A DNA stretch of 64,000 nucleotides from positions 31,744,001 to 31,808,000 of the forward strand of contig OZ076420.1 in assembly GCA_964187785.1 (NCBI GenBank), read 5' to 3'. This stretch comes from Amphiscolops sp. MND2022 (taxonomy: Eukaryota). Under the pieces are notes generated by a model. That model had not been told where the DNA came from. It saw only the letters and a program-made list of their open reading frames with translations, and did not search any database. Numbering within the stretch: the stretch's first letter is position 1; every line of letters begins with the position of its first letter. The translations under genes were made by a program, and so were the position numbers. Below are positions 11,593-38,899 of this stretch, piece after piece.

Positions 11593-12490
11593 CTGTTTTT
11601 ATTCACCTTTATTCTATTTATTTTCAAATTTGTCATTTAACAGAGTTTCTAGTTTCTTTTATATTTTGAAAGTTTAAATATAAGAAAGCGCAAATTAGAA
11701 AACGAAATGTGAATCCATTGGATTCACAATCTACCACATTTTCATTTCTGAATGGGACAAAAACAAGAAACGAGCTATCTGTTACTGTTGACGTTCAATC
11801 TTATTCTGTCTGAATGAGAAAAATTGGCAAATGTATCTTTATTGGCAAAACTCAACAGAATGGGAAAAACTGAAATACTAAATTTCTCATACTATTTACT
11901 TGGTAAATATGTACTAGGAACAGTTTTTTCGGCACTTTACTTCAACTTTTTGGCGCCGTTTGTGTCACGAAATTCCCATTTTTGGCATTTTTCGACAACT
12001 TCGCAAAAAACAAGTAACAAGTCATAAATTTGCAATTGAAAATCACAAATTCACATTGTCTTTTACAAAAAAAACTTGTTCAGAGTGTTTTCCGTCACGT
12101 TAGGCCGATCAGCCTCGAATGCATTCAGGATAGAAAGAAACTAAAAAGATTGTCATTCACCACATGGTCTCAATACAATTTACAGTTGCTATCGAACTAT
12201 CATTGTTTTCAACGTTAGTCAAGCTCTAGCTATAACAACCTCACAAAGGCGTAAACATCTATCTGCGAAGGGTCTGAAATACTTTTAACACAAACTTGTG
12301 GGAAAAACAGTAACACGCTAAACAACCCGCCTAAAGATTCAAAAGAAGTTGAGCAGAAGATTTCAATTGGGGATAGCAAAAAATACAGTAAACAACACAT
12401 TCTTTGAGTCACATTTTCTTTACTCTATAACACACAATGAAATCGAGTTTGTAGAGGTACAGGACGTTGAGTTTGTCATAAAATTTTCAT

Positions 12491-15400
12491 TCATTGTAAA
12501 CTGGTTTGATATAAGGATCGATAACTGTTCGAACACTTGAAGTGACCACGACATGCTACGAAGCTACATCGAATCATGAAAAACCCGAATTCACGATGTT
12601 CAGTGAACCTCAAAATTTTGATGAAGGCATCTTCACCTTCTTTGTTACTTGCGATCACGTCCCATCGTTTCCCAAGCACACTGTCCCATGACTGATTAGA
12701 CCCTTTGAGGTCATTGCTGATATCCCCAGAAAACTTCACTGTTTCTTTTGAGGACGTCGTTTCAAAACCACACATTTTACGGGTCAACGGCGTCGCTGGA
12801 ATCAATGATTTTGTCATTGAATGTTTTTTCTGGGCAAATCCAACCATCCTTTTGACTGCTGAAAGCACCGCGACAGCTTGGTTAATAGGATGAACTAGAG
12901 TGTGGATATTGAATTCTTCTATTTCGTCATCGATAACTTGAACTTCTAGTGCGGGCATGCGTACTTCAATATCGGGGTTTGTTTCTCCTATCATTTTAAC
13001 AAACGCCTTTCGTTTGCTGCAATCAAAGAACAGTTCTTTTACCTCAAACGTCGCGTTTGCATAGTTGGTGAGAGACCCAACTTTCAGGATGTTGTTATAG
13101 CATGGCGCATACTTCAACTCAACGTTCTCGTCACTGTGTGGTATCAAAGATATTGCATCCACAAAAGGTATTGTTTTTGGGGGGCATCGCTTTTTTGGTA
13201 CGGGAGGCCTGGAATCGATTTTGGTCGGAGGTGATTCAAGTTCTTCGTTGGTGTCATCTGGAGCAGCCTCAACAGGCAAGTTTGCCCGTAATTGTCGATA
13301 AGAGACAAAAAATTCTTTTCCTTCGTCATCAACGACCATGCACTGTCGCAGGAACGGATCGTTGATCATCACTGTCGCAGTAACAACTGATCCGCAGCAA
13401 GTAATCTCGCAATTTTCGAAGTCGCCGATACAGTCACAATCTTCGTCATTTGATTGCCAAAAGAAAACTTCGTCATTGCGCATTAACTTCCTTGGATTGA
13501 AAGGCAAGCTTCTACCCCTTTTCTTGCTCAGCGATTCATCCAGTTTTTGGGCTTTTCTAATATTCCAACGTCGCTGAAAAAAGTTGAAAGTTAGCTCTCG
13601 CGTTTCAAATTTTTATCAACTTCAATAATGGGTTTTTTGAAAAAAATATTGTGGAGAATATCAACACGTGGATTGTCATTGAAATCTGGCAGATTTTGCT
13701 GAACTGCCATTTTTTCCTAAACATTCAACGAATGAGCTTGTTCTTAAATGGTCCTAAAACGATTGTGGAAAGTAAGACCATATCTTTATACATGTGTCGT
13801 GGAAACCACATACATATCTTAAACTACAAGAAAACCATTACCAAAGGGGATAGATAGTACGTCAATATTTAAATCTGACTGTATTGTCCTGGTTTCCACC
13901 ACTTTAAGCATATTGTCCTGGTTTCCACCAAAATAGCATTCACTGTTCGATGGCCACGAAAGCTACTGTGGAAAGTAAGACCATATCATTATACATGTGT
14001 CGTGGAAACCGCATACATATCTTAAACTGTAAGGAAACAAAAACCAAAGGGGGTAAGTACGTCAATATTTAAAATCTAATATACCGTATTAGTGTAATGG
14101 AGCAATGACTCAATTTTGAATGGCGTTTTTTGGAATATTCTGGCAATTATTCATATCTGGCCTAATATTGAAATCTGGCAGATTTGGATAAAATGATACA
14201 TTTTTGATTGATTAGCAATTTTAGAGGCCGGCTTTTGTTCGCTCGGAAGACATTATGGACATATTTTCAAAATAGTTTGAAGCTAAGACAAGTTGTCTCT
14301 CTGACTTCTAATAGCAGCAAATTTTGAGGTCATTGCTGATATCCCCAGAAAACTTCACTGTTTCTTTTGAGGACGTCGTTTCAAAACCACACATTTTACG
14401 GGTCAACGGCGTCGCTGGAATCAATGATTTTGTCATTGAATGTTTTTTCTGGGCAAATCCAACCATCCTTTTGACTGCTGAAAGCACCGCGACAGCTTGG
14501 TTAATAGGATGAACTAGAGTGTGGATATTGAATTCTTCTATTTCGTCATCGATAACTTGAACTTCTAGTGCGGGCATGCGTACTTCAATATCGGGGTTTG
14601 TTTCTCCTATCATTTTAACAAACGCCTTTCGTTTGCTGCAATCAAAGAACAGTTCTTTTACCTCAAACGTCGCGTTTGCATAGTTGGTGAGAGACCCAAC
14701 TTTCAGGATGTTGTTATAGCATGGCGCATACTTCAACTCAACGTTCTCGTCACTGTGTGGTATCAAAGATATTGCATCCACAAAAGGTATTGTTTTTGGG
14801 GGGCATCGCTTTTTTGGTACGGGAGGCCTGGAATCGATTTTGGTCGGAGGTGATTCAAGTTCTTCGTTGGTGTCATCTGGAGCAGCCTCAACAGGCAAGT
14901 TTGCCCGTAATTGTCGATAAGAGACAAAAAATTCTTTTCCTTCGTCATCAACGACCATGCACTGTCGCAGGAACGGATCGTTGATCATCACTGTCGCAGT
15001 AACAACTGATCCGCAGCAAGTAATCTCGCAATTTTCGAAGTCGCCGATACAGTCACAATCTTCGTCATTTGATTGCCAAAAGAAAACTTCGTCATTGCGC
15101 ATTAACTTCCTTGGATTGAAAGGCAAGCTTCTACCCCTTTTCTTGCTCAGCGATTCATCCAGTTTTTGGGCTTTTCTAATATTCCAACGTCGCTGAAAAA
15201 AGTTGAAAGTTAGCTCTCGCGTTTCAAATTTTTATCAACTTCAATAATGGGTTTTTTGAAAAAAATATTGTGGAGAATATCAACACGTGGATTGTCATTG
15301 AAATCTGGCAGATTTTGCTGAACTGCCATTTTTTCCTAAACATTCAACGAATGAGCTTGTTCTTAAATGGTCCTAAAACGATTGTGGAAAGTAAGACCAT

Positions 15401-16617
15401 ATCTTTATACATGTGTCGTGGAAACCACATACATATCTTAAACTACAAGAAAACCATTACCAAAGGGGATAGATAGTACGTCAATATTTAAATCTGACTG
15501 TATTGTCCTGGTTTCCACCACTTTAAGCATATTGTCCTGGTTTCCACCAAAATAGCATTCACTGTTCGATGGCCACGAAAGCTACTGTGGAAAGTAAGAC
15601 CATATCATTATACATGTGTCGTGGAAACCGCATACATATCTTAAACTGTAAGGAAACAAAAACCAAAGGGGGTAAGTACGTCAATATTTAAAATCTAATA
15701 TACCGTATTAGTGTAATGGAGCAATGACTCATTTTTGAATGGCGTTTTTTGGAATATTCTGGCAATTATTCATATCTGGCCTAATATTGAAATCTGGCAG
15801 ATTTGGATAAAATGATACATTTTTGATTGATTAGCAATTTTAGAGGCCGGCTTTTGTTCGCTCGGAAGACATTATGGACATATTTTCAAAATAGTTTGAA
15901 GCTAAGACAAGTTGTCTCTCTGACTTCTAATAGCAGCAAATTTTGGCTAAAAATGCAAACTTATTTTGGTCCCAATCGTGAGTAATTTTTTTACTCACGA
16001 TTGGGACCAAAATATCACAAAATCTTTTTCATTGGAATCATGATTTAACTTTCATTTTTTGAATTTTCCAAGAATGGAAGTAGAACTTCTCAATTTTTGA
16101 TGTTAAATGCTAGCGCTATAAATAGTATGTCAAGGTTTAAATCTCACTTTTCTGTCTTGCCCTCAGGAAATTTTGATTTTTTTGTTTGACATTTTCTAAT
16201 ATTTTGGCATTTTCGAATATCTGGCTTGTCGTCTAAATTTTGCAAACTTTGTTAAACTTCCGGTTTCTAGTTAGTTCACTCCAACGAATGAGCGTAGCGA
16301 GTTATTCAATTTATAATTCGATTTGTGTATTTTTTGTCCTCGAAACCTGTTTAGCATTTCATCGGAACTATGGCCTAAGAAATAAGAGAATTGTGGAAAA
16401 GATTTTGAAAAAAGTTTTGAAATGTTATATCAACCTCATCTTCCCTGTCGATTTCTGGCACTGTTATGTCAACTGCTTTTCTCGTAGCCCACTTCATCCA
16501 TTTGATTCTGACGCTCCAGTCACTCATGATTGCAGTGACTTTTGCAAGCTCCCAAATAAATGTTAGAGGGTCCAGGATATGGACCACTTCGTTCGTTTCG
16601 AACTTTTGAAGAAGCAT
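12491..16617 (-). CDS. Uncharacterised protein, possibly with several Tudor/SH3-like beta-barrels (~421 aa if exon 16617-16435 joins exon 13573-12491); interrupted by a tandem duplication
   Basis: Exon 1 MLLQKFETNEVVHILDPLTFIWELAKVTAIMSDWSVRIKWMKW ends GAG|gt (phase 0). Acceptor ttttcag|cga opens the long exon in phase 0 (RRWNIRKAQK...). A truncated second copy of that exon lies at 15192-14323. The domain call is pattern-based only. Confidence 0.55.
12704..15941. repeat. Near-identical tandem duplication, unit 1619 bp (12704-14322 / 14323-15941)
   Basis: Constant offset 1619 (ORF pairs 12705/14324, 13102/14721, 13651/15270). TTTG microhomology at 12704, 14323 and 15942. Confidence 0.95.
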
Positions 16618-17174
16618 TACTGCGTTTAAAGGTGAATAGTTTGAGACTGACTGGAATAGTCACCTTATCAATAATTCAATTGACATCCACTGGGGAAATA
16701 AAGAGATATTCCAATTCCTGCGTCAATTTCAAAGCTGGTGCAAAATGACGCCGCTTATAATTGAAGTAGAGGCGATGCTTAATTACTGTTGGTGCTCAGA
16801 TCTAATGAACACCCACTGGGAAAGTAAAGTAGGGCAATTGGGGGCATATTCAATTGGGGCGGCAAGTTGACACCGCTTATGATGAGGCGGCAAGTTGAAA
16901 CTGTTTAGGATTGAAGTAGGGACGATGCTTACTGTTTATCCTAAGGTTCAATTAATACTCACCTTTAAAATTAATCAAGAGATCTTTGGGGCATTTCAAC
17001 GCCGCCTATAACTTAAAAAAGATGACGCTCAATTTTGGTTGACAGCAATTGTTTGATAAAGATTTGCTCAGTTTCTTTCAAACCATTTTCACAATCAGTA
17101 GCTTCCAGTCTTCTCGAATATACATCACAGTTCCTTCCAAATTTTTGAATTGCTTGGTTGTAACTAAATAACTT

Positions 17175-20100
17175 ATGAATAATTCAAATTCCCAAAAGCA
17201 AACTCCTGCTCCTGATCCACCATTGTCCTACTCATCTGTTCTAAGTAATTTCTCGACTCCATTGACAATCTTGACCACATGGTTGATCGAATCCTCAACT
17301 CCTTTGCTCAGCGGAAGTTCAGAAACTTCTTTGACAAATTCGACACCCTCATTCGATGCAACAGTCTACTCGCAGAGCTCACAGACAGTCTACACGCAGA
17401 GCTCGCAGAGCTCGATTACTTACAATGTAGACGGGATTATGCAAGAAGAGCATCACGAGCCAAATCAGTCAGTCGAAGATCACGCGGTAACTCAAGCCGT
17501 GGTACATATGAAAGACTACCCTGATGATGAAGACATACCATTTTCCGTCGAGCCAAATGAAAGTAAGTAATTATGCATAACCTAAACCCTTAACCTCTAC
17601 AGTTTTTTTAGACCTTTTCGAACACTTGATGAAAATCAAAGTAGCTATCAATTTTGAATGATCCAAACAAGAATTAGATATATTGTCCTGGTTTCCACCA
17701 TCTTGGGCTGAATTTGAACATTGTAAACGCCGCGACCAGGCCGCCCAAATTTTGTCCCCTGTGTCCCCAACAATCATGACATGTAATAGCAACAAATATT
17801 TGTCTCTTTGACTTGTAATAAACACAAAATTCGTCTCAAAAGTCCTAGTCTCACGAAAACACTGATCAATCTTGTATGGCATTTTATGAAAACATGGCAT
17901 TTATCCATAACTGTTTTGTCATTAGAATATTGCAGATTTTGATGAACTGCCATTTTTCCGTAAATATTCAATGGATGAGTTCGTTCTTAAATGGTCCCAA
18001 AACGACTGTGGAAAGTAAGACGATATCTTTATACATGTGTCGTGGAAACCGCATACATATCTTAAGCTGTAAGAAAACAACTACCATAGGAGTAGTATGT
18101 CAATTTTTAAATCTGACTGTATTGTCCTGGTTTCCACCACTCTAGGCATATTGTCCTGGTTTCCACCAAAATAGCCTTCATTGCTCAATGGCCACGAAAG
18201 CGACTGTGGAAAGTAAGACCATATCTTTATACATGTGTCGTGGAAACCGAATACATATCTTAAACTGTAAGAAAACAACTACCAAAGGGGATAGTACGTC
18301 AATATTTAAAACCGTATTAACCGTCAAATGGTCATGGAAATATTGTTCAGTGTTGAATGGCGTTGTAGAATAACATGTCATTTAATATTATTTGGCTTGT
18401 CATCAAAATCTGGCAAATTTTGTTTAGGTGTGTTTAGATTTTCGATTGGTTAGAGTTCTTAGAGGCCAAAATGTTCTGGGCATATTTTGTCTTTCTGACT
18501 AATAAAAATTTTTGAAAAAACTGAAAACTCCAAACTAACTTACAAGTTGAATAGATGTCTTTTTTTGCAGATTCTGTTTCTCGAGTACAATACAAGCCAC
18601 CACGCTGGCTAATCGAAGGTTTGGTTGAGTATGCCAGCCACACGAGTCCTGACTTTCTCAACAAAACCGAAGGTGTGAAATTCCAACAATGTGTCAACGA
18701 AAGTGATGACCGACCAGTCGTGACAGAGCTCCTGTTCGTCAATTCTGTTGGGAAGTCTTGTTTTAGACCGAGCCATGTTGTCGACCAGTATTTGATCCCT
18801 GTACGTTTGTTTTTTTTTGTCATTTAAATTTATATATAGTTCGGAGTTTTCAAAACAACTTCGATTGAAAAATCTACATCCACTAAACCATTGTAGTTCT
18901 AGTGCAAAAGATCAAAGATTTAATCGAAAGCATGTATTTCAGGTACTTCAACAATGTAAAAAACTAGCCAATCAGCTGAAGTTCAAATTGGAACTCATCT
19001 ATCCAATTGTTGACGACCCTGAAGCACGATTGCCAAAATTGAAAAATCAAATCAGGGAAATGCAAGGAAAATTTGGCAATGAATTTGACCAGGATACCAT
19101 CAAAACATGCGTGAGAAAGCATCAAGATGCTCAACGATACGCGCGACAGTCAGCTCGAGCCACAACGTTCTTCAAATACATGAACGGGAAATGTGACTTG
19201 AACATCTTGGAGAAAAGAATCGAAGGGTTTTTCCAGAGGCAGAAATGGACAACACCAGAAGACGTCAAACAGGATATTAGAAAAGTGTTTCTGTTGGTTC
19301 TACCTATGCTACAAAATCCAGATTCGAGAAGGATGGGCAGTGATGGTTCTGCTAAAATAATGTACAAAGGGATGGCACATAACATGGATTTCGAGTGCCA
19401 GACCGTCCTATTCGAACGATGTGACACGCAGAGCTGGCCAGGCGTATGTCCAGCCACTTTCAAATCTTATGGACACGGAGTGGTCAGCACACAGAAGTTT
19501 TTTAAAAACGAGATTGTTCTTGACTACCACGGTCAAATACTTGAGAAAATGACATTGACACAAGCTCTGGCGATGGAAGGCGTACAGCCCGAGTATCTGA
19601 TGGAGGTACGTAATCTAAAGTTTAAAGTTTTTTGTTAGATACATACCAAGTGAATAAAGACAAATAAAAATAGATCTAAAAAGTCAAAGTATGAGTATTT
19701 GTTCTTTTATCAATTTTGGACCTAGAGAGCTAAAAGTGGAGAAGAAAAAAATTATTAGTTCACTAGGACCTAGCTAAAAGAAAGTACACGAAACTTTTTT
19801 GTGCTTAATACGATCTTTTTCTAAGCTGATAGTTTTTTGTATATTTCCATTTTTTTCATTATTCGCTCTGACGTAAACTCTACCGATTCTTCAAGAATTC
19901 AAATTTCTATCTTTTTTGTTACAATAATCCATTTTAGTCAAATTGGCGTTTGAATTCAATTTGGCGTTTTGAGATAAAATAGCACGTTAAGTAATTTCAG
20001 CAGAATTTTCACTATTTACACACTCGTTGAATACTGTCAATACGCGTCTAGTTGTATTTCGCTTACCGCTCTGGCTTTCTCGCAATTTGATTGGCTCGCT

Positions 20101-20778
20101 TCGTTTCAAACGTTTTGAAGTTCGTCAATAACGTTTTTTTCTAATCCGCCTGTGAATTCTTCTACTACGTTTATAGTAAACCTATCTCTAAACATCTCTT
20201 CTAATTTTATAGATGTTCCATTACAATGGGATGGATGCCTTGATGAATAGTCCGCCATTCCCAGCGTTCGCCCCGGAGTTTGTACCACATTAAACTTATA
20301 TGGTAATAGACGATCTATTCAACGTGTTAAACGGCTTGATGTCGTTTTATTTGCACTCAGAACGCTTTGTAAAGCCTTGTGATCAAATACGACTCCAAAT
20401 TGTGTACCGCATACATAATTTTTGAAATGATCACACGACAGCTAGTAACTCCAATTCATTTTTGGATTATTTCATTCAAATTCTGTTAAATATTGTGGGT
20501 TTTTGTAAGGTGTTCTTGAAACTTCTTTGTTCCAGGTGAAAGGTCCCGGGCGGAGACTGATCAACGCTTCCTCCGAGATATGTGAAAGTCACCCAAAAAA
20601 TCTATGTTTGGGACGCCTTATTAACCACTGTTCCAAAGATGCAAACATAAAGCAAACTGACATAGTGCTTTATGACGAGTCCCGAGTTTGCTGCTTCAGG
20701 GCTATAAGAGATATAAGCCCTTTCGAAGAATTGAAATTCGATTACGAGGACCCAACAGCGTGGTCCCTTTTTTCGTGA
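17175..20778 (+). CDS. SET-domain lysine methyltransferase, KMT5A/SETD8 (PR-Set7)-like; 4 exons, ~539 aa
   Basis: Exons 17175-17562, 18571-18800, 18847(?)-19605, 20536-20778, phase-compatible; the third acceptor is the least certain. YGHGVVSTQKFFKNEIVLDYHGQ, LGRLINHCSK and RAIRDISPFEELKFDYED match SETD8 KGRGVIATKQFSRGDFVVEYHGD, LGRLINHSK and IASRDIAAGEELLYDYGD. Confidence 0.85.
17680..18540. repeat. Modular repeat cluster inside SET intron 1
   Basis: Two A units plus linkers. Confidence 0.85.
20080..20410 (-). mobile_element. Gypsy RNase H end/linker fragment inside SET intron 3
   Basis: VQTPGRTLGMADYSSRHPS...RFTINV (ORF 20106-20288). Confidence 0.8.
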
Positions 20779-20959
20779 AAGATGACTTGTTGACAAATAT
20801 CTTCCTGTGCTTTTTCAAGAGTCTATTTATTCCGAACACTTTTTTTGTTTTTTAAAGCTACTCGTTTTGTTCACTTTTCGAATAATTATCAGATATATAT
20901 GAACCAGACTTTCAACCAGAGGATCAGAATACATGTAAGTTCAGTCAATTATCCATAGC

Positions 20960-21440
20960 ACCCTTTGTCCTGGTTTCCACCAAAATAGCATTCACTGTTC
21001 GATGGCCACGAAAGCGACTGTGGAAAGTAAGACCATATCTTTATACATGTGTCGTGGAAACCGCATACACATCTTAAACTAAGAAAACAATTACCAAAGG
21101 GGATGATAGATAGTACGTCAATTTTTAAATCTGACTGTATTGTCCTGGTTTCCACCACTCTAAGCAAATTGTCCTGGTTTCCACCAAAATAGCATTCACT
21201 GTTCGATGGCCACGAAAGCTACTGTGGAAAGTAAGACCATATCATTATACATGTGTCGTGGAAACCGCATACATATCTTAAACTGTAAGAAAACAACTAC
21301 CAAAGGGGGTAGTACGTCAATATGTAACTTTTAATATACCGTAGTAGTGTCATGGAAATATTGCTCAATTTTGAATGACGTTTTAGAAAATTTTGGCATT
21401 TAAAAAAAACTGGCTTGTCATCGAAATCTGGCATATTCCT
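20960..21440. repeat. Modular repeat cluster (two A units)
   Basis: Core motifs as above. Confidence 0.9.
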
Positions 21441-21703
21441 TTAATCTTCAGTTTTTCGACTACTTTACTTTAACGAATGAGCTTCGTGTTACGTCCATAA
21501 TTATATCAGTTCGTATTGGCTTGGTTTTAAAATATTTTAGTCACGAAAATAGGGGTTCCACGTCACGTAAAGAGAAGGTTGTTAATTATTTATTCAAGAG
21601 CATCTTTTTATTATGGTGTTAAATGTCCCTCTTTTTGTCGGTTCATCTTAACTCCTAATCTCAACTTTTTTCATCAAAGCGTCATTCTGCAAATATATTT
21701 CAG

Positions 21704-24700
21704 ATAGTCACTGTGACCTTCATACATCTTCATCACTAGTTGAGTTGAATACAACGTTGTTGAAATCTCATATCAACGCACTTTTGATGGACCCCTTAGC
21801 ACTTTGGAATGCCCATTCTGTACAAGTCGACAAAAATTTGCTGTTTATCGACTGCAAAATGTTCGAAGTCATGGCCGAGAAACGATTCACGAACAAATAC
21901 AGAAAATTCGAAAAGATCATTGACGATGCATTCGGCGGGTGTGGGTTGAATACCAAAGACTTACTCCGGAGAATTCCCATGAAAGGTCAAAGCAAACCGA
22001 CTGTGTGTATAGCAGTGAGTAACTTTTTAATCATCATTTTTTGCAAATGTCTATCTTTGTCATATTTGGCGCAATAATACTTTTTTCTAATTCTTGCTTC
22101 GCTGGCGTTTTGTATCCAATTCGTTAATTGAGTATATTGCTTCAAAGTCGGTTAAAAATCTGGATGCGTACGCAATTGGTTTTCAATTGTTTTCTTCATT
22201 GTGTTGTAATACCGCCCCTAATCCTTGTTTGCTTGCATCGCAAATGATTCGCAACATGCGGTTTCATTTAAATTGCTAAAAATACATTTACTAAATACAT
22301 TACTAAAACATTTACATATCCACCACAAAAACCGTTTCCGAAAAAATATTCTTTACAGGGAAAAATTGCGATGTTTCTAATCTTCCGAGGGTTCAAGGAT
22401 TTCCAATGGACCGACGCAAGGAAGAGATTTGTGGAATGCTTTGTCCCTCGATATTTGATTCCTTACGAAGATACTTTCAATTTTCCTCCTCTTGTAACAC
22501 CAACTTTGAATCCCCTTGCAATACGTACCTCGAATCTGTCTGCGCCACCAACAATGGTCCTTGAAACAATGGATTCACATACACCACCAACAACGGTCCT
22601 TGAAACAATAAATTCGTTTGCAACACGAAGAATGGACCTTGGAACAATGGATTCGCATACACCACCAACAATGATCCTTGAAACAATAAATCCATTTGCA
22701 ACACCAACAATGGACCTTGGAATAATGGTTTCGCATGCACCACCAACAATGGACCTTGAAACAATGGATTCCCATGCACCACCAACAATGGACATTGAAA
22801 CAATGGATTCGCATGCGCCACCAACAATGGACCTTGAAACAATGGATTCGCATGCACCACCAACAATGGACCTTGAAACAATGGATTCCCATGCACCACC
22901 AACAATGGACCTTGAAACAATGGATTCGCATGCACCACCAACAAAGGACCTTGAAACAATGGATTCGCATGCACCACCAACAGTGGACCTTGAAACAATG
23001 GATTCGCATGCACCACCAACAATGTACCTTGATTCAGCGACAATTCCAAATCCTAAAATGAGGAGAACAAAAAAATTGAACAAAGAAGCAGCCACTTGTT
23101 TCTGGAAAAGGGTCATCGATGAGGCCAACGATAATAAAGAAATTGGGTTCAATGAGTTTATAGAACAAGTGAAAGACAATATGATTAAACGGAAATACCA
23201 GGGATTCACAAAGAAGGAAGAAGTGAATGTGGTGAAAATTCTAATCGACCGTCTTTTTGAGAATCGAGGATCGACCTAGGAATTCAGTCACATTCTATCA
23301 CTTACTGCTCAAACTGGAAATATAGAGGCAGTCATAAAACTTATCAGATCGAAACTTTCGGTAGTTGGCTTGGGATACAACGTAGTACCCTGTATACGCT
23401 TGATCAAGAAATCGACAGCTGAAATCCAGACCTATTTTGTTTCACTATGCCATCCCGAAAGAACGTTCTCCGGTTTCCGATGCGATCTGATAAAATGTGT
23501 TGAGCTGGCCGCATACCTGCTCGGAATGTATGATTTATGTGGTTTGAGAATTGATATCTGGGGCGACGGTTGTGAAATTGGAGGCCTGGAAACAACCCGT
23601 TTTGCTTTTCGAGTGTTTTCGGAAAAAATTAGTTGCCAGTCATCATGTTCGGTGTTCTGTTTTGCATCGTATCGAGGAAAAGACAGCCGATTCGCGATGG
23701 AACAGAACCTTGGACCAACTATAGCTGGTGATCAAAGTTCGGGTTGGCTCTACCAGAAAACGTCGGAGTTGTCAGATCGTGGAGTTAAACTAACCTACAG
23801 TGGAGATACACCATTTTTGCTACGCCTGATACTTGGAATTTCCTGTGAAACGAATTTCAAATCAAAAATGTCACTTCATATTCCTGATAATAGCTTTTTG
23901 CCAACAAATTGCCACCCTGAAACAGGTCTGAGAACCGATCTCAAGATACCTTTCCGAGAAGAACTGCCAAAAACATCCCTTGTTTATTTCCAAGACGTGC
24001 GATGTATATGCCCTGACCCGACGCACATGATCACCAGATGTGTTGAAAACGACTTGAGGAGAGTGGCGCAGAAAATAATCACTGACAAGTATCCCGATTA
24101 TGGCCCCTCACTCAAAGCCTTTGAAGAAAATCTTACACGACGTGATGCAAAAAGGCCATATTTCCAGTTCAATGTGAACACAAAACTAGGTTCTGGTGTT
24201 GGTACTGTGAACAGTGTGTCATTAGCCGGAAGTAATGCCCTATCTATTATAGCAGAAAAAGAGGAATTGGCTGGCGCAAATGATTGTTCAATAGGGAATC
24301 TTTTTGAAGATGTATGGGATCCCAAAAACGATGTTGTTATTGGGAGTGAATCTGCTGCAAGTGCACAAGTACTAAAACAACTTCTCCCAGAACTTTTTGA
24401 TAAGCCTCACCCTAGTGACAAGACAAATCCGCCAATCTCTACATCTCGAAGACAGATGCATGTGAATTGCTGCGCTCCAGCCTGAACCGCTGTGCAATTC
24501 TCTTGAGATCTGAGCAGTTTGACGCCCAATGCTACAAAAAATGGGCTGAAATATATTATCAGACAACCATTTTGTTATTTGGTGAATGCTCATTGACACC
24601 ATATAAGTTGAAGCTCGCAATGATGCCACAGATTGTAGAAGGAGGGTTTGTGGAGAGACCTTTTGACCACATGTGCGAAGGGCTTGAAAAATCCAATCAT

Positions 24701-25714
24701 CACGCAAATCGCTATTTCCAGACAAAAACCATGCGTGGTGGCGGTAAAATTTACCATAAAGATCCTCTTTTCCTGGAATTGTCATCTTCATTTGGAAAGT
24801 TCCTCCGTGCATCAATTGAATTGAAAACAAAGAAGTATGAATGTTTGGAAATATCTGAAATACTTGAGAAACTTGTTGATGATTTGGATGCCAAATACCC
24901 CGGACCAACATACCTCGAAATTTGCAAGACCCCAATTTCCTCGACTTCTCTTGCAATCGGGAAGTCGCATCCCGATTCCCAACTTTTGAGTGGTATGAGG
25001 TTCACTTCAATTGGAAGATTAGGGGTAGTCGACGGGATTTCGTTAACGTAGGATGTTCTGATTAAACTCATCAACGAAATGGAGGGCATATTCATTGAAC
25101 ACGATCAAGCAGACACCCTCATGAAGACACTTTCACGACTGCCTAATTGCTTCGTTCTGGTCAAAGACGAAGAAGACCTAGTAATCGCCACAGGCTCTGT
25201 GCAAGAAATTGAAGACCTGAAAAAGAAAAGGCCGCTGGCGAAAAAAATAAAGCGAAGTAAGTCAAGTCTTTCCACGTCCCAGTCTTCCGATTCGGACAGT
25301 CAATACCCATCATCGCAAGTCACAGCAAGACAGAAAAAAGAAACCGCTCAATACTCACAAATTGCTCAAAAATTTGCCCAAGGAGGTCCAACTTTTTTGA
25401 AGAAAAATTTTCTCATTGATGTCAAAAAAGTAGTTACGTTGTTAGACCCCAAAGATTACACCATTGCCCCCGGAAGTAATTTTCGTCGAGCCAGAGTAAA
25501 TGATATGAGACCACTCTTCCTTGATCAAATATCAGGCAAAAAATCAAACGAGAATATATCGGCTGTGGCTTATCTCAAACGATACAGAAATGGACAAACC
25601 AGATTACCAAAACACTTTTTCGAGAATGATGATGACACTTTTGCCGGAGAAATTGACAACGTTGATGATGATGACGACGACGTCGATGAAGAATGTTCTC
25701 AGATCACTTTGTAG
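21704..25714 (+). pseudogene. RAG1/Transib-like DDE transposase with an N-terminal 13-aa repeat and a BRCT-like C-terminal segment; recently disabled
   Basis: ORFs 22371, 23370, 24467 and 25079 form one frame of ~1117 codons from the acceptor at 22358, after reading through TAG 23277 and TAG 25049 and removing a GACAA duplication (24417-24426). Motifs in RAG1 order: IWGDG (D 23565), YSGDTPFL (D 23805), PDPTH (H 24024), LTPYKLKLAMMPQIVE...MCEGLEKSNHHANRYF (E 24686). Probable upstream exon 21704-22014. Confidence 0.7.
22533..23039 (+). repeat. 39-bp coding minisatellite, ~13 units (DSHAPPTMDLETM)
   Basis: Unit ggattcgcatgcaccaccaacaatggaccttgaaacaat; preserves the reading frame. Confidence 0.95.
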
Positions 25715-25989
25715 ACTCCAGTGTTCAACAAAAAAAGGGACACCGTAATTATGTTGTTGATATTTGTGTTCATATCTAGCGATGCATTACTATTTCGAAA
25801 TAATACTATTAGAATTCTGTTCTTGAATTTGCGTATCTCTGTGATAAACATAACTCCAATTCAAGTTAGTTGTAAGAGACTATATTTTTCATACTCCGCT
25901 GAAGATCAGATACAGTGAAGATACGATACCAACACATCGTACCCCGTTACGTCGCGAGAAGTAGAGGTTATGATAAGCCATGGTAAACC

Positions 25990-28780
25990 AATCGAAAAGT
26001 TGGAGTTAATCAAAATCTGCCAGTTTTTATTTAAGAGCAAAACAATAAAAAATGCCACAAATTTACCAAACTCCATTCAAAAATGAACAATAGTTCCATG
26101 ACACTAATACGGTATTTTAAACTTTACATATTGAAATATTATCTCTGGTAGTTGTTTTCTTACAGTTTAAAATATGTATGCGGTTTCCACGACCCATGTA
26201 TAATGATATGGACTTACTTTCCACAGTAGCTTTCGTGGCCATCGAACAGTGATTGCTCTTTTGGTGGACACCAGGACAATATGCTTAAAGTGGTGGAAAC
26301 CAGGACAATACAGTCAGATTTAAATATTATACTATCTTACCTTTGGTAGTTGTTTTCTTACAGTTAAAGATATGTATGCGGTTTCCACGACACATGTATA
26401 AAAATATGGTCTTACTTTCCATTGTCGTTTTGGGGCCATTTTAAAAACGAACTCATCCGTTGAATGTTTACGGAAAAATGACAGTTCATCAAAATCTGCC
26501 ATAATTTAATGACAAGACAGTTATGGATAAATGCCATGTTTTCATAAAATGCCATGCAAGATTGATCAGTGTTTTCGTGAGACTAGGACTTTTGAGACGA
26601 ATTTCGTGTTTATTACAAGTCAAAGAGACAAATATTCGTTGCTAACAGTCTCGCAGCGCCTCGTTAAAGGGCCCAAAGACTAATAACAGAACTAATGATC
26701 TGTCTAGTTAAAGAGAGATTTGATGAGTGAATACTTTCAACTGACGCATTTGTATTTTACGTTTAGACCATATCGCGAATGATCTTTCACTCTTTTTCTT
26801 TTTCTACGGTTGTTTTTACTAACAATCTGCTAGCGATCTCGAGGTTTGTTCTAGAGCTAGCGCTTTGCCACATGGACCAAATTTAGTCAACAATAATTTC
26901 ACGTTTGAATTGCATTTTTAGTCAAAAGTTGTTGCTATTAAAAGTCAGAGACAAAATAAGTCCATTATATCTTTCGAGCGAACAATTGCTGGCCTCTAAA
27001 AACGCTAACCAATCAAAAATGTACCATTTGATCAAAATCTGCCAGATTTCAACAACAAGTCAGATATAAATAAATGTCAGAATATTCTAAAACGTCATTC
27101 AAAGTTGAGCAAAATTTCCATGACAATATTAAGGTATATTAGATTTTAAATATTGACGTACTATCCCCTTTGGTAGTTGTTTTCTCACAGTTTAAGATAT
27201 GTATGCGGTTTCCACGACACATGTATAATGATATGGTCTTACTTTCCATAGTTGTTTTCATGGCCATCGAACAGTGAATGCTATTTTGGTGGAAACCAGG
27301 ACAAAATGCTTAAAGTGGTGGAAACCAGGACAATACAGTCAGATTTGCATAATAACGTACTACCCTTTGGTAATGGTTTTCTTGTAGTTTAAGATATGTA
27401 TGTGGTTTCCACGACACATGTATAAAGATATCGTCTTACTTTCCACAGACGTTTTAGGACCATCCGAGAACGAACTCATCCGTTGAATGTTTATGAAAAA
27501 ATGGCAGTTGAAAAAAATTTGCCATATTTCGATGACAAGACAGTTTCAAATAAATGCCACGTTCCCAAAAAATGCCATGCAGAAATGTTTTCAGTGTTTT
27601 CGTGTGACTTGGACTTCTTTAGCCAAATTTCGTTGTTATTAGAATACAGAGTTAAAATATGTCCCTAAAATCTTTCGTGAGGAAAAAAGGAGGGCTTTCA
27701 GTATACTAAAATGAAAAAAGATTGTGATATTTTGGTCCCAATAGTGAGTAAAAAAATATTCACGATTGGGACCAAAATTAGTCATGAATAATTTCACTTT
27801 TGAATTGCATTTTTAGTCAAATTTCGTTGTTATTAGAAGTCAGACAGTTAAAATATGTCCTTAATATCTTTCGTGAGGACAAAAGGGAGGCCTTTCAGTA
27901 TACTAAAATGAAAAAAATTTTGTGATATTTTGGTCCCAATCGTGAGTAAAAAAATTACTCACGATTGGGACCAAAACTATTCGTGATTAATTTCACCTTT
28001 GAACTACTTTTTCAGACAAAATTCGTTGCTATTAGAAGTTAGAGAGACAAAAAGTGTCCTCAATATCTTTCGTGCGGACAAAAGCCGGCCTCTAAATTGC
28101 TGACCATTCGAAAATGTACCATTTTATCAAAATCGGCCAGATTTCAATTTTAAGGCAGATATAAATAAATGCCAGAATATTCTAAAACGCCAATCAAAAT
28201 TGAGTGATTGCTCCATGACACTAATACGGTATATTAAAATTTAAATATTGACATATACCCCCTTTGGTAGTTGTTTTCTTACAGTTTAAGATATGTATGC
28301 GGATTCCACGACACATGTATAAAGATATGGTCCTACTTTCCATTGTCGTTTTAGTACCATTCAAGAACTAGCTCATTCGTTAAATGCTTTTGAAAAACTG
28401 GCAGTTGACAAAAATCTGCTAAATTTTGATGACGAGGTAGTTATAAATATATGCCATGTTTTCTTAAAATTCCGTGCAAAACTGTTTCTGTGTTTTGGTG
28501 AGACTAAGACCTTTTTAGCCGAAATTTGTGAAATGCTATTGAAAAATGGCAGTTGATAAAAATCTGCCACATTTTGACAAAAAGACAATTCTGAATAAAG
28601 GCCTTTTTTTTAAATTGCTTGCAAACTTGTTTTCAATGTTTTGTTTTCATTAGACTAGGACTTTGTTAGCCAAATTTACTGGCTCTAGTTTTACTTTTGT
28701 CCGCTTCCAAAGCTTCTCTGTTGGCTAACACCCTCTTTTTGAAAAACACGAATATTTGTGTTATACAATATTCATTTTCC
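25990..28780. repeat. Largest modular repeat array (A units, linkers, hairpin units at 27729-27778 and 27928-27976)
   Basis: Head-to-tail recurrence of the same modules; a short unrelated stretch at ~26640-26880. Confidence 0.9.
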
Positions 28781-29670
28781 TCTCTCTGCGCGTTTCTCTC
28801 TCTACGGTAACTCAAACAATTTAGAGCTTTGTACAGAAAATGACTGTATATGAAAAAATTATTTGATCATTTAAATACAAAAATATATATCAAAAGAACG
28901 AATCAACAAATCAATAAGTTTCATCTGTTGAAGCAGTGAAAGAGTGGCTCGAGAGGGCTTATAATATCTTCTTTGGGTTTCTGCTGTACTGGATTTGATT
29001 TGAGGGGTACTGGTTGTGTTTAGAGCTGAGCCCTAAAAGGCTTAACATGAAGATTATTGTTCGGTCTCCAGATGTCATCGAAAATGATCTCTTCATCGTA
29101 CGTGTTTTTTTGTGTAACTTCGTACTTTGTTTTCCCGTTGGGGTAGAACACTTGGCAGTAGTAGCAAAACCCAACTTTGCGTGGGGTATGCGACTTTCCA
29201 TGTAACTTATTAACTGCGTTTTCGCCGTTTTGTGAGATGAGTTTATCCATTGAAGCAAGAAGCGAAAATGAGTACAGATGTATGAATTGTGGAGAGAGAC
29301 TGGGTGCAGAAGAGGGTTTGCGGAGAGACCGAGTACAGATGACCTGGTAAGAGAGACTGATTGATGGCAGAATGAGAACAGAAGGAGGAGAGAGACTGAA
29401 TGATGACAAAAAGAATAGAGACTGGATCGTTTGATTTTGTTTGGCAACAAGGAAAGAAATGTAATTGAAAGCCAAATTTTTTGGTTAACCCTTATTGGTT
29501 GAAATACTGCTTTGATGTCAGAATAAAATTCGAATAAAGTGTTTGGTTCTAATTACTTGATTATAAATGGCTTTTACCCTGCCGTCTTTTTCAAAGGTAA
29601 TTGTATTTTGTCAATAATTGCGCAAAATGCCCCCTCCCCAAGCGACCGCAGGGGAAATAAGGTTTAATTA
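28780..29670 (-). repeat. ~0.9-kb cassette, copy 2 (ORF 29020-29250)
   Basis: Same 76-aa ORF as copy 1. Confidence 0.85.
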
Positions 29671-32474: not shown

Positions 32475-33360
32475 CCTTGTGTCTTATTTTTTCCTGCGGT
32501 CGCTTTTGGAGGGGCATTTTGCGCAATTATTGACGAAATACAATTACCTTTAAAAAAGACAGCATGGTGAAAACCATTTATAATTAAGTAATTAGACCCA
32601 AACACTTTAATATAACTTTATGCTGACATCAAAGCAGTATTTCAACCAATAAGGGATAACCAAAAAGTTTGGCTTTCAATTGCATTTCTTTCATTGTTGC
32701 CAAACAAATTCAAACGATCCAGTCTCTATTCTTTTTGTCATCATTCAGTCTCTCTCCTCCTTCTGTTCTCATTCTGCCATCAATCAGTCTCTCTTACCAG
32801 GTCATCTGTACTCGGTCTCTCCGCAAACCCTCTTCTGCACCCAGTCTCTCTCCACAATTCATACATCTGTACTCATTTTCGCTTCTTGCTTCAATGGATA
32901 AACTCATCTCACAAAACGGCGAAAACGCAGTTAATAAGTTACATGGAAAGTCGCATACCCCACGCAAAGTTGGGTTTTGCTACTACTGCCAAGTGTTCTA
33001 CCCCAACGGGAAAACAAAGTACGAAGTTACACAAAAAAACACGTACGATGAAGAGATCATTTTCGATGACATCTGGAGACCGAACAATAATCTTCATGTT
33101 AAGCTTTTTAGGGCTCAGCTCTAAACACAACCAGTACCCCTCAAATCAAATCCAGTACAGCAGAAACCCAAAGAAGATATTAGAAGCCCTCTCGAGCCAC
33201 TCTTTCACTGCTTCAACAGATGAAACTTATTGATTTGTTGATTCGTTCTTTTGATATATATTTTTGTATTTAAATGATCAATTAATTTTTTCATATACAG
33301 GCATTTTCTGTACAAAGCTCTAAATTGTTTGAGTTAACGTAGAGAGAGAAACGCGTAGAG
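32475..33360 (+). repeat. ~0.9-kb cassette, copy 3 (ORF 32894-33124)
   Basis: Same 76-aa ORF. Confidence 0.85.
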
Positions 33361-34460
33361 AGAGGAAAATGAATATTAAACAACACAAATATTCGTATTT
33401 TTCAGTTTATTTCATTTTTGAACAAACTGCCAGATCATCACAATCTGCCATTTTTTGATGACATGCTGCAATTTTGGTACCAGTCATGAGTATCTCTATT
33501 CGTACTTTGGGATTCTTCGTTTCAATCAAAACAATTTCCATTGATATAAATTGTTAAAACAAGTCTTTCATGAGGACAAAAAGGAAGCCTTCTAGTATAC
33601 TAAGATGAAAAAAAATTGTGATACATTGGTCCCAATCGTGAGTAAAAAAAATACTCACGATTGGGACCAAAATTAATCAAGATTAATTTCACCTTTAAAA
33701 TACTTTTTAGCCGAATTTCGTTGCTATGAGAAGTCAGAGAGACAAAAAATGTCCTCAATATCTTGCGTGAGGACAAAAAGGAGGCCTTTTAGTATACTAA
33801 AATGAAAAAAAAATATTGTGATATTTTGGTCCCAATCGTGAGTAAAAAAATTACTCACGATTGGGACCTAATTATTCTTGATTAATTTCACCTTTGAATT
33901 GCTTTTTAGCCAAAATTCTTTGCTATTAGAAGTCAGAGAGACAAAGTAAGTCCATAATGTCTTTCGAGCGAACAAAAGCCGGCCTCGAAAAATGCTAACC
34001 AATCGAAAATGTACCATTTCATCAAAATCTGCCAGTTTTCAATTTTAGGCCAGATATATATGCATGTCAGAATATTCTAAAACGTCATTGAAAGTTGAAC
34101 AATTTTCCCATGACAAAATTAAGATATATTAGATTTTAAATTTTGACGTACTATCCCCTTTGGTAGTTGTTTTCTTACAGTTTAAGATATGTATGCGGTT
34201 TCCACGACACATGTATAATGATATGGTCTTACTTTCCACAGTCGCTTTCGTGGCCATCGAACAGTGGATGCTATTTTGGTGGAAACCAGGACAATATGCT
34301 TAAAGTGGTGGAAACCAGGACAATACAGTCAGATTTAAATTTTGACGTACTACCCTCTTTGGTAGTTGTTTTCTTACAGTTTAAGATATGTATGCGGTTT
34401 CCACGACACATGTATATTAATATGGTCCTACTTTCCACAGTCGCTTTCGTGGCCATTGAG
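33360..34460. repeat. Modular repeat cluster (hairpins ~33626-33672 and ~33825-33868, two A units)
   Basis: Core motifs as above. Confidence 0.9.
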
Positions 34461-34464
34461 CAAT

Positions 34465-37140
34465 GTAATAGCGGTCTACGAATCGATGAAGAAAAAAGGA
34501 TATTGAGCAATACTGTATTACAGACAGACCATATGGTGACTGGCCGAAGTTTCTTACTAAAAATACAGCAATTGATAGCTGGGATAATGGGCTTTTTATG
34601 AGTATAAAGTTAGCCCCAGGTTAAGTACGCTGATGATTAATGTAAGTTTAATGTTAAATGTAGTTTAGCATCATGTAGTAATGTTTACAATTACAATGGT
34701 GTGATTGAAGGTACTTTTCACAACACAAATATGCACTCGAAATACATCAGTTTTTAGTTTCTTTGAGCTTTGTAGTAGTTTTACTTGGATCCTTGTGGTT
34801 CTTCATTGTTAGCGGTTGGGCTCTTGATGTTTGAGATCATGGCGTTATTCCCGTAGAAATCGGGTTTGTATCTTTGTCTCTCACCTCTCCTTGCTTGTAA
34901 ATTCTCTTGTTGCACTGTTTTTCTGGGTGGTAGTTTCTCTGGTTTTGTCCTTTCCGCCATTTCTGGCTCATCCATTGGATTTGGCAATTCTTCTTCAGTT
35001 GTCTCTTCGTGTTGTTCTCTTTCGTTCTTTACTTCTGGTTTGTGGTGTGTTTGTTGCATATTCTCTTTGTCGCCGCTTTTGATTTCGATTATTGTTTCCA
35101 AGTTTTCTGCTTGTCTCTTTTGTCGTTCCTTTGCCTTTTGTTTTTTTTGTCTTCTTTTGATTTTTTCTTTTAATTTTGCCATGGGTGGCTTTGTTTTCTT
35201 GCTTCCCTCTACCTCGTTTTTCATTGGTTGTTTTGCCGCGAATTTATTGTTCTCGATTTCTGTCTCGCTGTGTGCGACGTCGCTGCACAATGACCAATCA
35301 ATTCGTATTGGTAGTTCGTTTTTTTTCTGTTAGTTCGTTTCCTTCTGGCAGTTTGTTCTCTTCTGGTAGTTCGTTCTCTTCTGGCAGTTTGTGTTTTTCT
35401 GGTAGTTTGTTTCCTATTGGCAGTTCATTTCGAATTGCAAAAAAATTGTTGTTCTGCCAATTGTTCGTCCGCTTGCTTTGATGAGCATGGTTGGTCGTCT
35501 GCATGGTAACGTCCTTCATCTCTATTTGACAAGATTGTGGCTTTCGTCTTTCCTGCTGGGAGGAACGTAATTGAATGCTCGGATTGGCTTAAGAGGGTTC
35601 CTTTACGCTTTTTGTACGCTCCTTCGAGCTGGCTTCCTCTCACCCTTTCACGGACCAGTATTGTCGAGTCTTGATCAGATTCAAAGTCGGTTTCTGTGAG
35701 TTTGAAATCCTGTGAACCTGAAATAGTATTTCCTTGATTTTTTACTAGCCTTTTAACTGTTTTTGGTTCTTTACCTGTGTATCTCTCATATGGGTATTTT
35801 GCATTTTTTGTGGGATACAATCTTAGTGTAAATAAACTTTATGAAAGGCATGAATTATCACGTTTCAGGACTATTTGTTTATTTGTTCTGAATTTCGTTG
35901 ATTGTTCTCATGAGCCGTTCAATTTTACCATGCCATTTCCGCGATGGTCTCTGATTGGGCATTCGACATGTTGTAATAACCGTTCTTTACAGAATTCTTT
36001 GAAACGTTTACTTTTGAAAATAGTGGCGGAATCCGTTCTAATTCTTTGTGGGATTCCGTGTCTGGCGATATAATTTTTTAGGAATTCGATAACGCGTTCT
36101 GTTGTCGGTTTCCCTCAGAATTTTGATTCGAGGCAACCTGAATAGTGGCCTCTTGAGACTAATAAACATTTTGCTTTCGCAGCGTTTTGGAATGGACCAG
36201 CAAAGGCGATAGCTATCTCCTGGTTATTTTTTTGACATTCTGGCAGTTCACCTACTTGATTTTGACTTAGAAGAGTTTTAATGTTCTTACCTGCTTGTGA
36301 GCATTGCGGGCATGTTCTCGCTATTGCTACCACTTCGCGATGAAGACGCGGCCACCAGAAATTAGATATGGTCGCCAACATGCTGTCCCGTCCCGGGTGT
36401 CGGTAATGGAGCGATCGCATAATGATCGGGCGTAATGGTTAAGGAATAACCAGGCGTTCGTCCATATAAATGAAATCATGCTGGTCGAGGCTTAGACAAC
36501 GAAATTTTTCACGCCACGGCGTGGGGAGACGGTTTATTTTAGTACTGTCTGGTTTTTTCAGTAGTTGTATTATCTTCTGAAGGAATTCGTTGCCTTCGTA
36601 TTGCGACACACACGTAAAATTACCCGCGTTTGGAGTACCTCAATCTGGCTCCCTGAGTTACAAACGGGGGTTTTTATTGGTGGTTGATTAACCACTTGCA
36701 TTATTTCGTCGTTCATGCTGTCGGTCTCGCTTGAGTCGAACATTCGTTCGCTTTTTCGTACGACTGTATTATTGCTGCTATCTGTTCAAGTGGCGTTTTG
36801 TTTGTTTTAGTAATTTTGCTCTCAATTGCCACTTTGATCTCATTTGCCAATTTTTTCTTGAATTGCGTTTTGCCTTCACTTGCCAGCTGCTCTCCTATTG
36901 ACTGATTCTGATTCGTGCTTGATTTTCGATTTGTTGTTGCTGAAACAGATTCATCATTTCTGATTATCCCATACACAGTAAACCAACTATTCCCGAGTTC
37001 TTCCGCTTTAATTTTATTTTCGTTACAATGATTTTCCGAAGGATGTCGTAATAAATAGTCTGCAATTCCCATTGTGCGTCCTTGGGCGTAGATTATTCTA
37101 AATTGAAAAGGTAAGAGTCAGTCTACCTATCTAGTTAACC
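34465..37140 (-). mobile_element. Degenerate Gypsy pol 3' half including the integrase catalytic core, acidic tail and probable LTR sequence
   Basis: Minus strand: GIADYLLRHPS; HYRHPGRDSML; RHGIPQRIRTDSATIF...HRGNGKIERLMRTINE (DDE core, ~35880-36080); ERVRGSQLEGAYKKRKG. Multiple stops and frameshifts. Confidence 0.9.
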
Positions 37141-38550: not shown

Positions 38551-38899
38551 AGGAAAGTGAATTATATTTTACACAAATATTCGTATTTTTCAGTTTATTC
38601 CAATTTTGAACAAACTGCCAGATCATCACAATCTGCCATTTTTTGATGACATGCTGCAATTTTGGTACCAGTCATGAGTATCTCTATTCGTACTTTGGGA
38701 TTTTTCGTTTCAATCAAAACAATTTCCATTAATATACATGTAACTTGTTAAAACATGTCTTTCGTGAGGACAAAAAGAAAGCCTTTTAGTACACCAAAAT
38801 GAAAAAAAATTGTGATATTTTGGTCCCAATCGTGAGTAGAAAAATTACTCACAATTGGGACTAAAATTATTCATGAATAATTTCACCTTTGAAATACTT

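Follow-up and report, generated by a model that had tools for sequence, protein, structure and literature searches.

A Probable Inactivated Transposase Gene with a Predicted RAG1-Type Core from a Giant DNA Transposon of Amphiscolops sp. MND2022

Introduction

RAG1, the enzyme that assembles vertebrate antibody genes, descends from Transib-type transposases, and the known Transibs are rare, low in copy number and mostly fossil. Does a broken gene in the genome of Amphiscolops sp. MND2022 belong among the relatives of this enzyme? The gene lies on the + strand of a 64,000-nt stretch of contig OZ076420.1 (hereafter the window, to which all coordinates refer unless another locus is named). A first-pass annotation of the window had read positions 22359-25714 as a divergent RAG1/Transib-like transposase recoverable from four pieces of open reading frame (ORF), and had assigned it to a new branch of the transposases related to RAG1, Transib and the CMC group (CACTA, Mirage and Chapaev).

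We suggest that positions 21787-25714 very probably hold a transposase gene that has been inactivated and that belongs to a giant DNA transposon of the cut-and-paste type. It is also highly likely, in our view, that the transposase is a sequence-orphan lineage of the CACTA/Mirage/Chapaev/Transib ('CMCT') clade, and not Transib or RAG proper. As described by Kojima in 2025, this clade is marked by CA..TG termini, target duplications of 2-5 bp and C(2)C and H(3-4)H motifs, and it includes lineages tied to RAG1 through HHpred only (PMC12730594).

Results

The four ORFs lie where they had first been placed (22371-23279, 23370-24485, 24467-25051 and 25079-25714, all on the + strand), and they proved to be parts of one transposase gene. 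Pieces 1 and 2 share one reading frame and pieces 3 and 4 another. The reference for lesions was L011, a natural copy with an open frame that is 98.3% identical to the window copy; against it, the gene is broken by two premature TAG stops and a 2-bp insertion (Table 1), and there is a 15-bp in-frame indel at 22862, inside a coding tandem repeat. In contigs from four public DNA runs of this organism, position 23277 is A and the 2-bp insertion at 24425 is missing, so that other copies are free of lesions 1 and 2 at the least. The runs are silent on the TAG at 25049.

The family to which this gene belongs has defined ends. A precise right end, ...GCTTGCCTGTGCACTGTAATG, is common to two copies whose flanks diverge beyond it, and the termini, which read CATTACAGTGCACAGG..., form an inverted repeat of 21 nt (CATTACAGTG...). 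The terminal 21-mer occurs 1634 times in forward and 1647 times in reverse orientation in the genome, as against 1 and 0 for the reversed control. Inverted identity is limited to about 21 nt; further inward the ends differ, with CGTGGAATCC-type subterminal repeats. Of 11 elements, seven short ones of about 140-1300 bp and four giants, all 11 are flanked by a target duplication of 2 bp whose sequence varies (ca, ta, ca, ca, cg, ca, tt, ga, ca, tt and at); any one such match has a 1/16 probability of arising by chance. On chromosome 1, paired ends lie 47.1-48.3 kb apart (53.3 kb in one pair and 40.0 kb in another) with one transposase copy each. The 3' end of the transposase gene faces the nearer element end. 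The distance from the gene to that end is 6.67 kb in four pairs; for the 53.3-kb pair it is 6.44 kb, and for the 40.0-kb pair 9.4 kb. Autonomous copies, such as that at C1:99630029-99678135, span about 47-48 kb. For the intact-family copy on C1, no left terminus was found within 35 kb of its right end.

Genome-wide there are about 3,280 termini, most of which belong to non-autonomous derivatives, only 140-1300 bp long, in which the two ends of the giant element are preserved (for example L027-L033, at C1:31760952-31761932 and elsewhere); they form a population like that of miniature inverted-repeat transposable elements.

The search for intact genomic copies that the first-pass annotation had proposed was productive. 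Six-frame searching of the genome (1.07 Gb) yielded 1250 candidates, of which 110 were scored as matches; more than 110 copies are present. About 45 of the scored matches have open frames of at least 1000 amino acids (aa), many of exactly 1175 codons. The matches divide into subfamilies whose amino-acid identity is about 97, 92, 67 and 62%. When copies were compared between chromosomes, identity was 99.6-99.7% across stretches of 9 kb and 5 kb, and the last spread was therefore recent. Between subfamilies, the transposase ORF is under purifying selection: the ratio of nonsynonymous to synonymous substitution rates (dN/dS) is 0.37 for L004 and L011 and 0.13 for L024 and L025, and for the most distant pairs (L004 with L024 and L025) the proportion of nonsynonymous differences (pN) is 0.31 and that of synonymous ones (pS) about 0.8. 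To judge from its near-identical copies and open frames, the family appears to be active at present. The termini, the target duplications and the copy number rule out a host gene or a domesticated one. A profile search of 1.84 billion representatives reached 581 clusters (at 50% identity) with an expect value (E) of 1e-3 or less, 198 of them at 1e-30 or less. A cluster look-up and the neighbourhood of one homologue, P0017, returned neither names nor shared neighbours, and we found no description of the transposase family in the open literature, the names in Repbase and Dfam being outside the scope of that search.

The likeness to RAG1 emerged from predicted structure. With AlphaFold and an alignment of homologues, A1, we built a model of the core from a natural copy that is intact (601 aa, L004:1357-3159); the model has a mean predicted local distance difference test score (pLDDT) of 81.5 and a predicted template-modelling score (pTM) of 0.80. 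When the model was compared with the PDB by Foldseek, the top 46 matches were all RAG1, HzTransib or BbRAGL (amphioxus ProtoRAG), with a best E of 2.1e-5 and 550-700 aligned columns; Hermes came next, at E 1.5e-2 and a template-modelling (TM) score of 0.24. VIA-align, run independently of Foldseek against 48,161 representative chains, ranked the same proteins first. Mouse RAG1 (4wwx) scored 15.9 over 402 residues at a root-mean-square deviation (rmsd) of 4.4, with model residues 25-539 aligned to RAG1 470-1008; a second RAG1 entry (6dbi) scored 14.8 (400 residues, rmsd 4.2), BbRAGL 14.6 (392 residues, rmsd 4.3) and HzTransib 12.0 (346 residues, rmsd 7.0). The P element followed at 9.8 over 289 residues, then helical bundles at 7.4 or less, ISCth4 at 6.5 and Hermes at 6.2. 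The structural comparison with RAG1, ProtoRAG and HzTransib that had been called for therefore gave the best solved matches over nearly the whole core, well above the P element and Hermes, and neither another superfamily nor a non-transposase headed either search. The modelled core has the RAG1 core fold, with DDBD, PreR, RNase H, insertion and CTD. Identity in the structural alignments with RAG1, BbRAGL and HzTransib (4wwx, 6cg0, 6b40 and 6pqn) is 9-12%.

Conservation singles out a set of residues within this fold. In 34 homologues, down to about 21-30% identity, D110, D114, D194, D264, H267, E484, E487 and H491 (core numbering) are invariant, and the invariance of these eight acidic and histidine residues is far above chance. 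D110 and D114 lie in a predicted strand (108-118), D194 follows another (188-192), D264xxH267 opens a helix (265-288), and E484 and E487 close a helix (478-481). We propose D114, D194 and E484 as the candidate aspartate-aspartate-glutamate (DDE) triad on a predicted RNase-H fold. The motifs quoted in the first-pass annotation were all located, namely DIWGDG (23553-23570), TYSGD (23793-23807), CPDPTH (24009-24026), LTPYKLKL (24593-24616) and HMCEGLEKSNHH (24668-24703), and the spacing of D114 and D194 is the 80 aa given there.

Short cysteine and histidine motifs flank two of these sites. A CxC (C260 and C262) stands directly ahead of the DxxH motif, and an H-x-C (H481 and C483) directly ahead of the candidate catalytic glutamate, at about 24003-24011 and 24668-24676 of the window. 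In the alignments A1 and A2 the CxC is partly conserved (61-64%) and H481 is conserved at 94%. The position equivalent to H(3-4)H reads Y459-K460-x-K462. C260, C262, H481 and C483 could form a substitute metal site for the C(2)C/H(3-4)H ligands.

Intact copies encode a protein of about 1200 aa, with a short N-terminal region that holds a 13-aa repeat, a core of about 600 aa and a C-terminal BRCT-like domain. The last of these provides the only recurrent sequence signal in the protein. Pfam BRCT or BRCT_2 matches occurred in 5 of 21 and 7 of 10 homologues, the best at 1.2e-4 and all below the curated cut-offs, and profiles matched the BRCT domains of PARP1 and Lig4. A model of the C-terminal 263 aa (m218b39128611, pLDDT 82) gave Foldseek matches of which the best 50 were mostly BRCT, with a few chains of pre-60S and nonhomologous end-joining complexes (E 1.3e-2 to 0.2, TM by target 0.55-0.72). 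On this predicted structure the C-terminus is BRCT-like.

At the other end, we add a predicted first exon upstream of the coordinates in the first-pass annotation, whose start at 22359 is the exact start of exon 2. The exon 1 part is continuous with the remaining protein in longer homologues from other assemblies (P0008, P0011, P0012 and P0018), and intact copies, too, have the exon 1 ORF on their upstream side (L021 5621-6010). With exon 1 spliced to 22359, the peptide reads ...TVCIA followed by GKIAMFLIFRGF, which aligns with ...LAAKVAKFIVLRGF of P0008. The contigs of the four public DNA runs hold no joint that skips the predicted intron, and no RNA run is on record. Exon 2 is 94.7% identical to L004, which has a 1175-codon open frame. 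The 13-aa repeat units in the N-terminal region are rich in T, M, D, S, H, A and P, and their number and sequence vary among copies and subfamilies.

Table 1. Features of the transposase gene, its element and associated repeats in the 64,000-nt window.
Feature	Position	Strand	Basis
Predicted exon 1, 76 codons (MDPLALWN...TVCIA)	21787-22014	+	Open in window; homologous to N-termini of P0008, P0011, P0012 and P0018
Predicted intron, 344 nt, phase 0, GTGAGT...pyrimidine tract...AG (GT-AG)	22015-22358	+	Read from sequence
Exon 2, the broken main ORF (four pieces), normal stop TAG at 25712-25714	22359-25714	+	Alignment to L011 and L004
Coding tandem repeat, 39 bp, 13-aa units TMDSHAPPTMDLE	22540-23030	+	Translation; self-matches at 39-bp steps; 15-bp indel relative to L011
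Predicted RAG1/Transib-type catalytic core, about 600 aa	23226-25030	+	AlphaFold model of intact equivalent; Foldseek; VIA-align; conservation
Lesion 1, premature stop TAG	23277-23279	+	AAG in L011; public DNA contigs read A at 23277
Candidate triad residue D114 (core numbering)	23565-23567	+	Core numbering
Candidate triad residue D194	23805-23807	+	Core numbering
DxxH motif (D264xxH267)	24015-24026	+	Invariant
Lesion 2, 2-bp insertion (AA), frameshift between pieces 2 and 3	24425-24426	+	Alignment to L011; some public DNA contigs lack these 2 bp
Candidate triad residue E484	24677-24679	+	Core numbering
BRCT-like domain, divided by a Ser-rich acidic linker	24983-25480	+	Pfam sub-threshold and profile matches; model
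Lesion 3, premature stop TAG	25049-25051	+	AAG in L011
Element body collinear with intact-family copy	7904-26644	+	blastn against C1:61011000-61046999; collinear blocks of 89-94% identity
Right-hand terminus ...GCTTGCCTGTGCACTGTAATG, sole terminus of the family in the window	47263-47284	+	Terminus match
Dispersed repeat copies	6789-7234, 13756-14149, 15375-15768, 17999-18426, 21011-21401, 26074-26439, 27034-27464, 34064-34469, 45206-45643

Discussion

Where does this transposase belong? Its termini (CATTAC...GTAATG), the length of its target duplication and its fold fit the CMCT clade, the zinc motifs apart, and we therefore place the family within it. The new branch proposed by the first-pass annotation is supported by the fold, with the qualification that CACTA (Transposase_21) predicted structures match the core about as well as RAG1 does, and therefore only membership of the wider clade is supported. 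In a structure search of the Atlas, the nearest clusters were unnamed eukaryotic families (TM 0.58-0.66); three Transposase_21 clusters reached TM by query of 0.55, 0.50 and 0.53 over 376-419 residues, and RAG1 reached 0.53. The AlphaFold database returned uncharacterised proteins at E 5e-11 and weaker. Parallels are offered by ESTA, Plavaka and Lanisha, recently named outliers of the clade, which share with the present family a link to RAG1 by structure-aware comparison only, 2-bp (or TA) duplications and CA..TG-type termini; some lineages of this type carry epigenetic cargo (TET/JBP, in fungi), a parallel to the histone-methylation genes found here (PMC12730594). Going by their descriptions, these lineages are set apart in that they occur in fungi or moss and keep C(2)C/H(3-4)H, whereas the present family is from an animal, lacks the motifs and carries other cargo.

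Several observations weigh against this account, and most of them concern sequence. Pfam gave no match to the core in the four window pieces, in one intact copy or in 31 homologues (21 plus 10 distant ones). Likewise, phmmer and hmmsearch found no transposase in the PDB, which as searched includes RAG1, BbRAGL and HzTransib chains, when queried with the pieces, the intact protein, the E-motif segment or profiles from A1 and A2, and neither profile reached a RAG1 or Transib chain at E up to 10. The RAG1 motif comparison made in the first-pass annotation was not reproduced at the sequence level, RAG1 being absent from the phmmer matches of the E-motif segment in the PDB. A genome scan with PF12940 (RAG1) was empty, as was one with PF03089 (RAG2), in line with the earlier remark that no RAG2-like gene was to be seen; both scans say little, because control genomes also gave no match. 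Aligning A1 by hhalign with two Transposase_21 proteins of the same genome gave a probability below 1%, a weak test with single-sequence templates. On the structural side, the TM-scores of the RAG1-type Foldseek matches are just 0.40-0.49, the model falls below pLDDT 50 at residues 485-509, right after E484, and neither A1 nor A2 has columns for the C(2)C and H(3-4)H zinc ligands that are canonical in the clade, as had been noted for CxxC and HxxxxH. As for the element, the figure of 47-48 kb comes from termini that were matched exactly on a single chromosome, together with four target duplications that match; the splice 22014/22359 is predicted from sequence and homologue alignment, and transposition is deduced from the copies. 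The transposase core is thus a sequence orphan, whose proposed kinship with RAG1 rests on predicted structure.

We think it unlikely, though of the alternatives it deserves most attention, that the transposase is an ordinary CMC member of Mirage, Chapaev or EnSpm type, possibly already in Repbase or Dfam, and that the likeness to RAG1 is general to CMC and Transib. CMC elements (EnSpm/CACTA, Mirage and Chapaev, with Transposase_21 and DUF4218) have CA..TG termini, 2-4 bp duplications and subterminal short repeats, and are large with extra genes; in its termini, 2-bp duplication, subterminal repeats and large size with captured genes, the present element is CACTA-like. A 2-bp target duplication is Mirage-like. 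The predicted fold is equally similar, the Atlas scores of the Transposase_21/DUF4218 clusters (TM 0.50-0.55) being close to that of RAG1, and the lineages are grouped together by Kojima (PMC12730594). However, none of the 31 homologues carries a Pfam signal of Transposase_21, DUF4218 or DUF1280, and neither Transpos_assoc nor an N-terminal Chapa/RING zinc finger is present. The hhalign result and the lack of C(2)C and H(3-4)H, the defining motifs of CMC, also argue against this reading, and the BRCT-like C-terminus is a further difference. A genome scan with PF02992 detected 19 loci, all of them other than copies of the transposase, so that true Transposase_21 elements of the genome were found at other loci; a scan with PF06918 (DUF1280) gave nothing usable.

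Separate CMC-type (Transposase_21) elements are represented in this genome by L042-L044 (C10:35934949, C3:69805651 and C4:6604690), whose Transposase_21 ORFs are intact, 694-729 aa long and present in several identical copies.

Could the family instead be a very divergent Transib, a member of the Transib/RAG branch proper whose termini and duplication length have drifted? Among solved structures RAG1, BbRAGL and HzTransib rank first, with alignments that span the DDBD-to-CTD region, and the Atlas feature neighbours include RAG1_RNase_H clusters (scores 0.84-0.87), which we treat as a lead only. The E-G-x-E-x-x-N spacing at the glutamate presumably resembles that of RAG1. To our knowledge no CMC structure has been solved, and for this reason the PDB ranking cannot separate the Transib/RAG branch from the CMC branch. 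Against this idea, which we consider quite improbable, stand the 2-bp duplication in all 11 elements, in place of the 5-bp duplication typical of Transibs (PMC4411706), and a tip that reads CATTACAGTG and not a CAC heptamer: a heptamer of the recombination signal sequence type (CACAGTG) is not at the tip, and TACAGTG occupies positions 4-10. Neither Pfam nor PDB profiles detected similarity to RAG1 or Transib cores, RAG1 hidden Markov models being without a match. The protein also differs from RAG1, BbRAGL and HzTransib in lacking their zinc ligands, in its 80-aa spacing between aspartates and in its BRCT-like domain, and the PF03089 scan gave no RAG2-like partner. The element is 47-48 kb long and its hundreds of copies contrast with autonomous Transibs, which are usually present in single or few copies (PMC4411706).

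A generic RNase-H DDE fold with an alpha-helical insertion domain, whose nearest relative would be another superfamily (P, hAT, Kolobok or MULE), is very improbable: one AlphaFold database match is automatically named 'MULE transposase domain', and Yuan and Wessler reportedly stated in 2011 that the DxxH motif is common to several superfamilies, but RAG1 and its relatives lie 2-6 Z units higher in VIA-align with about 110 more aligned residues, RAG1-type structures fill the first 46 Foldseek ranks, and a 2-bp duplication does not suit P (7-8 bp), hAT (8 bp), MULE (9-10 bp) or Kolobok (4 bp). The P element transposase (6p5a), in particular, is a clearly weaker and shorter structural match to the core; P elements have 8-bp target duplications and THAP and GTP-binding domains, and neither domain was seen here.

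Returning to a CMCT-clade transposase, we can suggest how it might act. The protein would bind both the inverted repeats of 21 nt at the termini (CATTACAGTGCACAGGCAAGC) and the repeats of CGTGGAATCC type in the subterminal regions, and D114, D194 and E484 would bind metals. Excision would probably proceed via a nick and then a hairpin on the flanking DNA, as in RAG, Transib and hAT, and the 3'-OH ends would be joined to the target with a 2-bp stagger, which would produce the 2-bp target duplication. As for the BRCT-like domain, it may bring in repair factors or phospho-protein partners, or may aid assembly.

More tentatively, and with somewhat less than an even chance in our estimation, the family may rank as a superfamily of its own among DDE transposases with the RAG1 fold, one without a name so far and placed as a sister group to Transib and CMC or as an outlier to them. 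This lineage, with its 2-bp duplications, would have lost the zinc module and acquired a BRCT domain, and would still be moving elements of 47-48 kb with histone-methylation genes in an animal. If so, it would provide a natural, high-copy and experimentally tractable relative of the RAG recombinase, and an animal transposon with chromatin-modifying cargo. The family shows the predicted RAG1 fold in an abundant and apparently recently active lineage, with more than 100 autonomous-type copies and about 1,600 terminus pairs. Its differences from RAG1 (no zinc ligands, a 2-bp stagger and a BRCT-like domain) offer a way to test what cutting and hairpin formation require of the RAG1 architecture. 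The family also bears on how the Transib and CACTA branches diverged, and its size and chromatin-enzyme cargo on how transposons may manipulate host silencing. For genome annotation, a sequence-orphan family of this kind will escape standard Pfam-based pipelines.

Additional Observations

Within the window, the element can be followed over part of its length (Table 1). The left terminus is absent from the window, and upstream of 7904 the sequence stops following the intact C1 copy. Positions 42859-45643 are again loosely collinear (83-88%) with the 3' part of that copy, and the terminus at 47263-47284 is possibly the right end of the window copy, with about 16 kb of extra DNA ahead of it. Inverted repeats roughly 0.9 kb long and 96-97% identical lie at 28740-29633, 32511-33404 and 37734-38592, and also at 5866-6420; those between 26644 and 42859 resemble one nested element that has long inverted ends, or more than one copy of it.

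Two pairs of inverted repeats around the gene, one of 216 nt (17787-18002 and 26429-26644) and one of about 430 nt (21011-21437 and 27036-27464), were considered as element ends and rejected, since both are parts of dispersed short repeats and identity between element copies continues far beyond them. One dispersed repeat, about 400-640 bp long, is present many times within the element and in its surroundings, in either orientation, and yields misleading inverted-repeat pairs.

A SET-domain gene lies upstream of the transposase gene in the same repeated unit, at 17175-20778 of the window (ORF 20527-20778) and at 2991-3806 of L021. It has SETD8-like C-terminal motifs (GRLINH...ELKFDY) and is 99.7% identical between copies on different chromosomes.

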